Assembly (NCBI RefSeq): GCF_020745735.1
Contig: NC_083409.1
Coordinates: 12,343,423-12,397,036 of the forward strand
Length of the DNA stretch: 53,614 nucleotides
Direction: 5' to 3'
DNA from: Hemiscyllium ocellatum
Lineage: Eukaryota
Part shown: one piece after another, positions 20,200 to 38,830 of the stretch
How positions within the stretch are numbered: the stretch's first letter is position 1
How the letters are laid out: every line of letters begins with the position of its first letter
Program-made: the position numbers and the translations under genes
The notes under the pieces: model-generated
Databases searched by the model: none
What the model was told of the DNA's origin: nothing
The model's input: only the letters and a program-made list of their open reading frames with translations

Positions 20200-20248
20200 A
20201 TGATTTCACACATCCAGCTGATCTGGCCCCTGGCATTCTGTGTCGCAG
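20200..20248 (+). CDS. IGKV: Ig kappa light-chain leader exon ([16 protein letters not shown] + G)
   Basis: ATG at 20200, 49-nt phase-1 exon, donor CAG|GTAC; peptide matches the recalled shark kappa (NS4/type III) leader. Confidence 0.95.
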
Positions 20249-20406
20249 GTACAAATCTCTCTCCTTCCATCTTGAATCTTTAGCTGCTCTTCATTTCACT
20301 CCAATGCTGAAACCAGAGGAATGCTCAGTGTGTCCAACAATCTCTCATTTGACAAGCTCTTTCTGTGACAGTTCTGACTTCACTGTGTTTCTCTCTGACC
20401 CCTCAG

Positions 20407-20739
20407 GTATCAGTGGGGACACCATCATGACTCAGTCTCCCCCAGTGCTGTCAGTGGAACTGGGCCAGACTGCAACCATCACCTGTAAATCCAGTCAGAT
20501 TGCCAGTAGTAATGTTGAATGGTTCCAGCAGCGGGAAGGACGGAAACCCTCTCTCCTGATCTACAATGCAGCATCACGATTCACAGGAGTCTCCAACAGA
20601 TTCACCGGGACAGAAGTGTCCAGCACACACTTCACCCTGACAATCAGCAACGTTCAGAATGAGGATGTCGCTGATTATTACTGTCAGCAAAGTTACGACT
20701 CCCCTCACACGTTCGGTAAAGGAACCAAGCTCAGACTGA
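20407..20739 (+). CDS. IGKV: Ig kappa joined V-J exon ([27 protein letters not shown]...WFQQ...[22 protein letters not shown])
   Basis: Acceptor cctcag|G; C23, W35, YYC and FGXG in one open frame; donor CTGA|GTAAGT; no RSS or spacer between V and J. Confidence 0.97.
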
Positions 20740-21087
20740 GTAAGTAAACCCTTTCAATACAAAACTTGCTAAAACACAAATGCTGATTTGTTGAAGGTGT
20801 TAGTGGGGAGCTGCAGTGAATGAAATGGTTGATTGAGGAGCACTGTGTCTAACAGGGTGTCCAGCTGTATTTCTTTAGTTCCATTGCCCCCTTTAAGCAG
20901 CAAGATATAACTGAGTATGTTTTACTCACTGTGTGAAGGAGCTCTGTCCATTTACAGCCTGTGGTCCCATTCCTGCAGCATGGAGTGAAATCAGTGAGTA
21001 GCCTCCTGCCAGTCTCAGTGTGATGGACACGGGCAGAGTTCGATGTGAGCTCTGGCTCCCTGTCCCAGTCTCTGATCTCACTGACCT

Positions 21088-21108
21088 CAGCAGCAGCAGC
21101 AGCAGCAG
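21088..21108 (+). repeat. (CAG)7 microsatellite in the J-C intron
   Basis: cag x7 followed by cacagtg. Confidence 0.9.
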
Positions 21109-21159
21109 CACAGTGAGACACCGCGCTCCCACCTCCCCCAGCTTTAACTCTGCTCAATC

Positions 21160-36000: not shown

Positions 36001-37135
36001 ATCCTTTCCCCATTTAAAAAACAGTCTATGTCTTTATCTTTCTTACTAAAGTGCATAAGCTCACATTTTCCCACACTGTATTCCATCTGCCACTTCTTGG
36101 TCCACTCTCTGAGCCTGATCAACTCCTTCTTCAGCTTCTCCACTTCCTCAACACGACCTGTCCCTCCACTTATCTTTGGGTTACCTGCAGATTGAGTAAC
36201 AATGTCCTCAGATCCTTCATCCAGATCAATAATGAATCATTCATTTTTGGTGAATAGCCGTAGTCCCAGCATGGACCTTTGCAGAACCACACTAGTCACC
36301 GGTTGCCATCCTGAAAAAGATCCTTTTGTTCTACTCTCTGCCTTCTGCCAGGTGGCCAATCTTTTATCCATGCCAGGACCTTGTCCCTAACACCACAGGC
36401 TCTTCTCTTCTTTAGTAGCCTCCTGTATGGCACTTTGTCAAATGCTGTCTGTAAATCCAAATAGATCACGTCCACTGGTTCTCCTTTATCTCACTTGTTC
36501 ATTCCTTCCTCTAAGAATTCAAACAGATTTGTCAGGCCTCCCCTTGATGAAGCCATGCTGACACAGCCCGACTTGACCATACCCTTCCAACCCCCCCTGC
36601 AATCTCATCCTTAAACTGAAGTCTACAATCTTACTCAAGACTGAGGTCAGACTAACCAGCCTATAATTTCCTGTCTTCTGCCTCCCTCCTTTCCTAAACA
36701 GGGGAGTTACATTCACCATTTTACAGTCCTCTTGGACTCTCCCTGACTCCAGTGATTCCTGAAAGATCACCATCAATACCTCCACAATCTGCTCAGCTAT
36801 CTCCTTCAAACTCTGGGGTGTTGTCTATCCAGTCCGGCTGATCTATCCATCTCAGAACTTCCAGCTTCCCCAGCACCTTCTCCTCAGTGATAACCATTAC
36901 TCTCATCCCTGCCCCTGAATCTCTTTAAGTCCTGGTATACTACTGGTGTCTTCCACAGTGAAGACTGATGTAAAGTCACTATTCAGATCCTCTGCCATTT
37001 CCTTGTTCCCCATTAGTACTTCTCCAGCCTCATTTTCCAGCATCCCAACATCTAGTCTTGCCTTCCCCTTAGCTTTTATATTTCGACAAAAAAAAACAGT
37101 GTGCAATCTTATTTAATATTATTGGCTGGCAAGCT
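33060..37135 (-). mobile_element. Nest of mostly antisense CR1 fragments (RT, ORF1 about 34050-35090, 3' parts); short + strand tail at 33060-33150
   Basis: MDFSKVFDKVPHDKL, SRMVCCLPGARVK, VTPLFRKGGRQKTGNYRLVSL motifs. Confidence 0.85.
35551..35870 (-). mobile_element. HE1-like V-SINE
   Basis: Homologous to 3172-3500. Confidence 0.9.
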
Positions 37136-37199
37136 TTTATCTTTCATCTTCTAACCCCTTATTGCAGTTTTAGTTATAAACATACAGAATCCTTGGGTT

Positions 37200-37800
37200 T
37201 TAAAGTACAGCACAGAGTAAAAAAGCAAGGAAGCAATGCTACATCTCGACAGATCACTGATCAGACCAGATTTGGAGGATTGTGTTCAGTTATGAACACC
37301 TTATTTAAAGAGCCATATTAAAACCCTGAAGAGAGATCAAAGGGGTTTTATCAAAATGATACCAGGAATGAGTGATTTCAGATACAAGGAAAGCTTAGAG
37401 AGATTGGGCTTATTCCCCTCTGAGCAGAGAAGATTAAGAGGTGATCTTATAGAGTTGTTCACTGTTTTGAACAATTTTTGACAGTATTAAGGAGGATATT
37501 CCATTACCATAAGTTGGTATCTCTGTAACTATGGGTAATAATTTAAGATGGTTAGCAAGACAGCTAGGAGTGAGATGAGGAGGAATGCCTTTCCGAAGAG
37601 AGTTTTAGGATTTGGAACATGCTGCCTGACAGGATGGTGGAGAAGGATTGTGTTGGAGCTTTCAATGTGTATATTTGAAATTGATGAAGTTAGAGTGCAA
37701 ACGAGATTGGACTGGAGAGTGGGACTAGCTGGATAGCTCTTTCTGGAGCCAGCACAGACATGATGGGTTGAATAGCCTCCTTCTGTACTGTAAATACTAT
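37200..37800 (+). mobile_element. CR1 3' fragment
   Basis: LYRSLIRPDLEDCVQL-like frame; tail cctccttctgtactgtaaatactat. Confidence 0.75.
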
Positions 37801-38501
37801 TATTCCATTTCATCCTGTCAGCTCTTTGCCTTCCTCAGGTCCTGTTCAATGTCACTCCTGCATTTTCTATCCTCCTCTCAGCTTTCTGCAGGTTTGAACT
37901 CCAGATAACCAACATCACCTTCCCTGTTTGGTCTGCCCTACTATGGCTGCCTTTTGACATCCCAGGCTGAGAGACTAGATTTGGGAGTCCCACCCTTACT
38001 CATTGTGGGAACAAATTCTGAATGATCTCTGTCTCCTCCTTTGAGGGATCCTACTGCCCTGACACTGATTTCCCATCATGTCGCTGGTTCCAGTCCACTT
38101 TTACCAAAGTACCCCACAGTTTAGTAAAATATTTCACTCCCAAATGAAAACTTTAACACTTGTTCCACTTGTTCCGTTTCTATCCCTAATCTCAATCTCA
38201 CTGAGTTCTGATCACTGTCACTGAAATGCTCCCCTATTGATAGCCCTTCCAGCTGCCCACATTCATTCCATAAATGATGGTCCAAAACTGTCCCTTCTCT
38301 TTCACCATCACCTTCTCAGGGGCAATTAGGGATGGGCAATAAATGCTGGCCGCGCCAGTGACACTCACATCCCAAGAAGCAATTTGAACAATGCCTGTTC
38401 GTTCGTCGGGTTTGTTAGCTACAAATGTTCAAACATTTTCCCAGTGAATATTCTGAGAGTTTAAATTGGCAGTGATTAAAATTATTTCTCTTGTCTTTCA
38501 G

Positions 38502-38830
38502 GCCGTGAGAACGATCATCCCAAGCTGGCTCTGCTGCCCCCCTCCCTGGAGCATGTCATTGCCAAGGGCACTGCCACCCTGGTGTGCCTTGCCAATCACT
38601 TCTACCCTGATGAGCTGGAGGTGCAGTGGAAGAAGGACGATGCAGTCATTTCGGACGAGGTTCAGACCAGCAACTACCTGCGAGCTTCAGAAAGCACCTA
38701 CAGTGTCAGCAGCCTGCTGACCCACTCTGGGTCTGACTGGGAGTCCAATGCTCGCTTCTCCTGTGCCCTCACCCACGTGACCCTCCCCTCTCCCCTCAGC
38801 AAGAGCATCAGGAAATCAGAATGTGTGTAG
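38502..38830 (+). CDS. IGKC: Second Ig kappa constant exon C2; open frame, no V/J of its own in this window; functional status unknown
   Basis: Acceptor cttgtctttcag|GC; 329 nt like C1; 22 nt and 13 aa differences from C1; all three Cys and the Trp retained. Confidence 0.85.

Follow-up and report, generated by a model that had tools for sequence, protein, structure and literature searches.

We analyzed a 53,614-nt stretch of the genome of Hemiscyllium ocellatum (assembly GCF_020745735.1, contig NC_083409.1, positions 12,343,423-12,397,036 of the forward strand; hereafter, the window), which carries an immunoglobulin kappa light-chain locus where one exon encoding a joined variable and joining segment (VJ) is followed by two constant-region (C) exons, termed C1 and C2. 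The complete unit formed by the VJ gene, C1 and the tail behind it is referred to below as cluster A, and the partial unit that contains C2 as cluster B. All coordinates are those of the window, and the features are collected in Table 1. A sequence-only reading of this DNA had described a single phase-1 VJ donor lying before two C exons of the same phase, length and acceptor, with no leader, V or J in positions 30592-38501. Both descriptions stand: the two C exons are open and of equal length, and no such segment was encountered between them, either by tblastn of the whole window or by a regular-expression scan for a recombination signal sequence (RSS) or a J relic. Indeed, a tblastn search with VJ, J, leader and C peptides revealed no other V, J or leader and only the two C exons in the entire 53.6 kb, while the scan of 30592-38501 found neither an RSS nor an FGxG J relic. 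As the sole assembly gap (200 N at 18289-18488, with no other masked sequence in the window) lies upstream of the leader, VJ, C1 and C2 are all on one uninterrupted stretch. Taken at face value, the window thus presents one VJ and two C exons; once the fusion at 33030 is recognized, it presents one full cluster and half of another.

Table 1 Features of the kappa locus in the window (UTR, untranslated region; LINE and SINE, long and short interspersed nuclear elements; ORF, open reading frame; RT, reverse transcriptase; polyA, polyadenylation).
Feature	Position	Strand	Description
Promoter block of the VJ gene	20040..20199	+	Octamer-like ATTTACAT at 20086-20093, TGACGTGG, TATAAA at 20134-20139
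Leader exon	20200..20248	+	49 nt, donor GTACAA; 16 residues, then a Gly split over the intron
Kappa VJ exon, apparently germline-joined	20407..20739	+	333 nt, in frame, acceptor ...CCCCTCAG, phase-1 donor GTAAGT
J-C1 intron	20740..30262	+	9.5 kb, minus-strand LINE pieces, RT-like ORFs; collinear with the J-C intron of L004
C1 exon	30263..30591	+	329 nt, canonical C-kappa, terminal coding exon of cluster A; Pfam C1-set 80.8 bits
C1 3'UTR	30592..31165	+	Aligns with the 3'UTR of L002; AATAAA at 31119-31124, GT-rich element at ~31150-31163
Cluster A tail past the polyA site	31169..33029	+	Collinear with L004 15108-16909, 71-75%
Fusion junction, cluster A tail to cluster B J-C intron	33029..33032	.	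L004 homology ends at 33029, L003 homology begins at ~33032
Distal J-C intron of cluster B	33032..38501	+	End of LINE ORF2 first; SINE at 35551-35871
C2 exon	38502..38830	+	329 nt, open, good acceptor, divergent; probable orphan C of cluster B; Pfam C1-set 67.5 bits
C2 3'UTR	38831..39406	+	Ancestral AATAAA at 39356-39361 and GT-rich element retained
Conserved ~96-nt block behind kappa C exons	39802..39883	+	83.5% identical to L004 17101-17196

The two C exons are in the same phase, and each is preceded by the acceptor TTTCTCTTG(C/T)CTTTCAG; splicing to C1 would join the VJ end, ...CTCAGACTGA, to GCCATGAC, and any splicing to C2 would join it to GCCGTGAG. Leader and VJ followed by C1, as well as leader and VJ followed by C2, yield an open chain of 236 amino acids, and both predicted chains keep the two domain cysteines and the C-terminal cysteine. 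The exons are 93.3% identical at the DNA level and 88.9% at the protein level, with 12 of 108 residues differing, mostly within the first 20. Self-comparison of the window revealed that they are part of a duplicated block of 1.3 kb (29834-31169 and 38095-39406), comprising ~430 nt of intron, the exon, the whole 3'UTR, the AATAAA signal and a GT-rich element; the homology stops ~45 nt past AATAAA. The 3'UTR bounds were set by L002, a spliced shark kappa cDNA contig. C1 has an intact, canonical polyA site, with 7.4 kb separating it from C2, and the AATAAA and GT-rich stretch of this site are conserved in C2 and in the Chiloscyllium punctatum locus L003 (see below). Acceptor, reading frame, cysteines and polyA signal are thus intact in both copies, and a new AATAAA (38868) and an ATTAAA (38911) are found shortly after the C2 stop codon. 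Within the intronic part of the block, a patch of 60 nt located ~150-210 nt before each C exon (30055-30114 and 38315-38374) is 98% identical between the copies, while its surroundings are 79-87% identical; this patch could be a splicing or regulatory element, or could be part of a conversion tract.

The VJ gene has the parts of a complete kappa gene. Its promoter block has a mean column identity of 92% when aligned with those of two kappa clusters from C. punctatum, one of which, L004, is a distant paralog with flanks that are only ~74% identical. The invariant elements of this block are ATTTACAT, which departs from the octamer at one position, TGACGTGG and TATAAA. The leader matches that of L003 at 100% and that of S. 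torazame at 88%, and is separated from the VJ exon by an intron of 158 nt. The VJ exon scores 71.5 bits against Pfam V-set, its J reads FGKGTKLRL, and there is no RSS between V and J. As V and J are contiguous and in frame, with no RSS or spacer, and as the relative in L003 is split, the exon appears to be germline-joined. A gene model from S. torazame covers a span of ~10 kb, similar to that of the VJ-C1 gene. In the J-C1 intron, an antisense LINE ORF (26277-26474, + strand) is 70% identical to residues 1-66 of the EukProt model P0003, which splices a LINE-derived stretch to a kappa C exon. This suggests that in another elasmobranch genome a kappa C exon is likewise preceded by a member of this LINE family, and that the P0003 model is an annotation artefact. 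No CTCF consensus match was found in the window, nor any Rfam match in 29500-40500.

With a kappa-like V, an FGxG J and a C1-set C, all in one orientation, cluster A is a shark kappa cluster of type III/NS4. From residue 4 to its end, C1 is identical to two annotated kappa chains, P0020 of H. ocellatum and P0005 of C. punctatum. Nine annotated chains from two genera show 0-4 differences in 105 residues from C1, i.e. from the canonical C-kappa, with seven of the nine showing only 0-2. A nurse shark NS4-type kappa differs from C1 at 7 of 105 residues, and C2 does so at 11 of 105. As in the V-J-C clusters described for kappa in cartilaginous fish, cluster A contains a leader, a kappa-like V, one J and one C1-set C, with its own promoter and polyA site; unlike in those clusters, a second C exon lies within 8 kb, without a V-J of its own, as the stump of a neighboring unit. 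A few nurse-shark kappa genes are germline-joined, and at least one of these is expressed early in development (PMC5192425; PMC2193156). The VJ exon considered here is like the germline-joined NS4 genes of the nurse shark (Lee et al. 2000, PMC2193156) in that its V runs in frame into J, without an RSS, in what appears to be germline DNA, but it belongs to a different species, and the nearest available relative, L003 of C. punctatum, is split. We found no literature on hemiscylliid kappa loci, nor on V-J-C-C clusters in cartilaginous fish.

The origin of C2 became apparent from comparison with two C. punctatum loci, namely L004, a compact cluster with a joined VJ, and L003, where V and J are split. 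Window positions 17935-33029 are collinear with the whole L004 cluster unit (L004 7622-16909), with the collinearity covering the upstream block, promoter, leader, VJ, proximal intron, LINE remnant, C block and 1.9 kb past the polyA site. As this stretch is collinear with one whole L004 unit, VJ, C1 and the tail behind C1 constitute one complete unit, cluster A. To the right of position 33032, the resemblance is to the other locus: window 33032-38289 aligns with the distal J-C intron of L003 (22956-28137) at 87.7% identity over 5282 aligned positions, and the SINE at 35551-35871 is common to the window and L003 and absent from the paralogous J-C1 intron. Behind the exon, the C2 tail tracks L003 for 130 nt beyond the polyA site, while the C1 tail does not. 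Since the 5.3 kb upstream of C2 match the distal J-C intron of L003, including the SINE, C2 is taken to be the 3' half of a second cluster, B.

The change from one homology to the other is sharp and can be placed to within ~2 bases. Immediately to the right of the junction lie the last 14 codons of ORF2 of a plus-strand CR1-like LINE (QSLDQYMDDDGIA*), and the same ORF continues leftward for more than 800 nt in L003; because of this longer run, the truncated state in the window is the derived one. The two-C layout thus does not appear to be an original unit that relatives have kept, as judged from the one relative examined, C. punctatum, the L003 locus of which is gapped. As to L003 itself, its V-J region (14295-15360) is split, with CACAGTG-12-ACAAAAAAC followed, after ~510 nt, by GGTTATTGT-23-CACTGAG and J. 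The V of L003 contains a frameshift, and its C exon departs from the canonical sequence by seven amino-acid changes. L003 is a dead cluster, serving here as a yardstick for drift, and, as its V-J is only 83% identical to the VJ of the window, it is probably a paralog rather than an unjoined orthologue of the window gene.

Several other routes to the present layout were considered and rejected. A weaker collinear chain, 67-84% identical, connects positions 22567-26321 of the J-C1 intron to positions 33164-36512 between C1 and C2 and consists of minus-strand LINE pieces. An in-situ tandem duplication of the intron and C block is nonetheless out, as the pieces of the chain are only 67-84% identical, and as the copy preceding C2 is nearer to C. 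punctatum (87.7%) than to the J-C1 intron and contains a SINE which that intron lacks. The possibility that C1 is the intruder, inserted into an original cluster running from VJ to C2, is likewise out, given the collinearity of the entire stretch, from VJ to the tail of C1, with a single whole L004 unit. A RAG-mediated deletion is unsupported, as no convincing heptamer or nonamer adjoins either breakpoint in L003 or L004.

Whether C2 is still under selection was considered from the substitutions that it has collected. When changes were polarized with two cDNA outgroups, the C1 branch carried two nonsynonymous and four synonymous changes, and the C2 branch 11 and four, respectively; Tajima's relative-rate test on the amino-acid changes of C1 and C2 gave p=0.013. 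In a three-way alignment, the numbers of unique changes in the exon tract 30295-30654 were 3 for C1, 15 for C2 and 12 for the C exon of L003, whereas those in the flanks were 55 for C1, 56 for C2 and 64 for L003 (Fisher p=0.010 for C1 versus C2, exon tract versus flanks). With the flanks being equal, these exon counts mean that C2 has evolved at five times the pace of C1 and much like the C exon of L003, where V is dead. Among the replacements in C2 is L74H, which affects a Leu in the LTL motif that is kept in every shark chain compared and in human C-kappa and C-lambda, and the Pfam C1-set score falls from 80.8 bits in C1 to 67.5 bits in C2. C2 would thus seem to lack purifying selection comparable to that acting on other C-kappa exons, although the numbers are small and constraint is not zero. 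By a simple two-phase estimate, C2 may have been free of constraint for the most recent ~60% of the period that has passed since the C blocks diverged from a common sequence.

We consider that C2 is probably a relic, being the 3' half of a paralogous cluster B that was fused behind the complete cluster A between positions 33029 and 33032. This reading builds on what is directly observed at the locus, namely its anatomy, the junction, the homology of the left side to a whole unit, the orthologue-level homology of the right side to a C. punctatum J-C intron, and the asymmetry in rates. Accounted for in this manner, cluster A would be complete, with promoter, leader, germline-joined VJ, 9.5-kb intron, C1, polyA site and 1.9 kb of tail, while of cluster B there would remain the distal J-C intron, C2, a polyA site and a tail. 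The most likely cause would be a deletion in the Hemiscyllium lineage, which we infer in preference to other rearrangements, and which would have removed the rest of the cluster A tail, the spacer, and the promoter, leader, V, J and proximal intron of cluster B. Transcripts from the VJ promoter would be spliced to C1 and end at its intact polyA site. Left without a V-J of its own, C2 would not be in regular use and would be drifting, not yet hit by a stop codon or frameshift, and is presumably not expressed. The loss of the front half of cluster B and the drift of what is left would be the usual course of decay for a gene family of very large size. An orphan left by a partial cluster was also the fallback of the sequence-only reading, and that proposal is supported, now with a defined junction.

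This explanation has some drawbacks that need to be considered. C2 is open, has an acceptor as good as that of C1, and retains all three cysteines and the ancestral polyA signal. Over its last 267 nt, the divergence from C1 is only 3.7%, compared with 14-15% in the flanks, and its rate of unique changes is 0.63 of the flank rate rather than 1.0. These values fit a late loss of constraint or gene conversion, but they also fit some lasting constraint. The omega of the C2 branch, ~1, comes from 15 changes and does not significantly exceed the values of 0.33-0.5 obtained in interspecies comparisons of expressed C-kappa. In addition, the J-C intron of L003 contains a 4-kb N gap, and its V-J is only 83% identical to the window; because of both, the L003 scaffold does not prove which sequence once lay upstream of cluster B here. 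The chance of an exon staying open under neutral drift for this long is ~0.2 (0.6 for no stop codon multiplied by ~0.3 for no frameshift), and openness is thus only a mild argument for use. In the less diverged part of C2, synonymous divergence is also low (0.085), and the two together suggest either gene conversion from a canonical C or a late loss of constraint.

One alternative, put forward in the sequence-only reading, is that the single germline-joined VJ is used with both constant regions through alternative choice of the terminal exon. With the polyA site being chosen along with the exon, such a gene would work in the manner of IgM and IgD. Much at the locus agrees with such use: both exons are open and equal in length and phase, with near-identical acceptors, an AATAAA of their own and predicted 236-residue chains with all cysteines, no V or J intervenes between them, and C2 has diverged less over its 3' four-fifths than in its flanks. 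Nonetheless, the proposal is not supported, and against it stand the derivation of C2 from another cluster through the fusion at 33030, the canonical and intact polyA site of C1, an exon that is transcribed 8 kb earlier, and the fivefold faster evolution of C2, the 11 nonsynonymous to four synonymous changes of which resemble those of a C exon in a V-dead cluster and include L74H at a conserved Leu. Nor does C1 look like a proximal terminal exon that could be bypassed, as, judged from sequence, neither its polyA site nor its acceptor appears weak, the latter matching that of C2. No protein encoded by the window and no C2-type constant region was found in the protein collection (queries C2, P0001 and P0020), which barely covers the transcripts of this species; as only four or five kappa proteins of the species are included, this blank means little. 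Overall, we regard two-C expression as improbable, even if VJ-C2 splicing at a low level is conceivable. A narrower version, where some VJ transcripts read past the C1 polyA site and splice to C2, with selection on that product, would explain why the 3' part of C2 is the better kept, although this too appears doubtful.

Two further accounts keep C2 as an orphan or question its position. The 3' half of cluster B might have been placed behind cluster A by partial segmental duplication or insertion rather than by deletion, in which case an intact B may exist elsewhere. A copy-and-insert event would leave the same picture as a deletion. Microhomology at the junction is slight or lacking, and its two sides have no repeat in common, as is compatible with end joining of any kind; moreover, C1, C2 and L003 have C blocks that are related in a star-like pattern, with pairwise identities of 86-87%. 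However, one deletion in a tandem array is simpler, and the orthologue-level match to L003 (87.7%, with the shared SINE) suits an original copy and not an extra one, such that a duplicative origin is unlikely, if conceivable. It might also be argued that two clusters or haplotypes were falsely joined at 33030 during assembly, and that C2 is not truly downstream of C1, as a gap of 200 N does exist 1.7 kb upstream of the leader. Yet VJ, C1 and C2 lie on a gap-free stretch, the difference of 13-15% between the blocks of C1 and C2 is far beyond what is expected of alleles, and no repeat by which an assembler might have been misled is common to both sides of the junction, which makes a false join unlikely; we consider an assembly artefact to be highly improbable.

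Some repeats and conserved blocks in and around the clusters are also worth recording. In the tail of cluster A, a foldback with arms that are 75% complementary (32355-32663), resembling a miniature inverted-repeat transposable element, is inserted relative to L004. In the window as well as in L003 and L004, the kappa C exon is followed by a block of ~96 nt; the copy at L004 17101-17196 is 96% identical to L003 33884-33979 and to an inverted copy at L003 34078-33985, the two L003 copies forming a foldback pair, and this identity between the C. punctatum copies compares with ~74% in the flanks. Within the window, the block is found only behind C2, because the tail of cluster A is cut ~190 nt before the position that the block occupies in L004. 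It could be a conserved tail element or a foldback transposon. The SINE of cluster B belongs to a SINE-like family of ~310 nt, eight copies of which, 66-82% identical and in both orientations, are found in the window (3195-3496, 3870-4179, 12517-12844, 35551-35871, 40736-41048, 42730-43061, 43351-43658 and 50390-50706), with copies also in L003 and L004. Far upstream of the VJ gene, the span 7150-8172 is a tandem duplication (7150-7658 and 7654-8172) with a unit of ~510 nt and 84% identity between the copies.

Orphan or relic immunoglobulin C genes are exemplified by mouse J-lambda4/C-lambda4 and the human IGLC pseudogenes. C2 is like these in being a C exon that was left without a usable V-J partner by rearrangement of a duplicated array and that drifts. 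Unlike them, C2 is still open and follows immediately behind a gene that looks functional and has the same orientation, and it is for these reasons that it mimics a gene with two C exons. In IgM/IgD, one V exon is followed by two constant regions that are chosen at the RNA level, both of which are conserved and of proven use. An alternative-use model for the window would share the single V exon and the two downstream constant regions picked at the RNA level, yet here the constraint on C2 is relaxed, the proximal polyA site is canonical, and any use of C2 is hypothetical. In the rabbit, IGKC1 and IGKC2 each have their own J segments and are reached by DNA rearrangement; as there, two kappa C genes are found in one locus, but C2 of the window has no J.

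The locus calls for caution, as, in the high-copy immunoglobulin arrays of sharks, one deletion between neighboring clusters can suffice to produce a V-J-C-C arrangement where both C exons are open, and such an arrangement should not be taken as a two-isotype gene without RNA evidence. If VJ-C2 transcripts do exist, this would be the first light-chain cluster with constant-region choice at the RNA level, with one invariant V domain being made with two constant regions. As it stands, the locus offers a cleanly resolved case of cluster death, where the breakpoint is placed to ~2 bases, the surviving C exon evolves at ~0.6 of the neutral rate, and its neighbor is nearly frozen.

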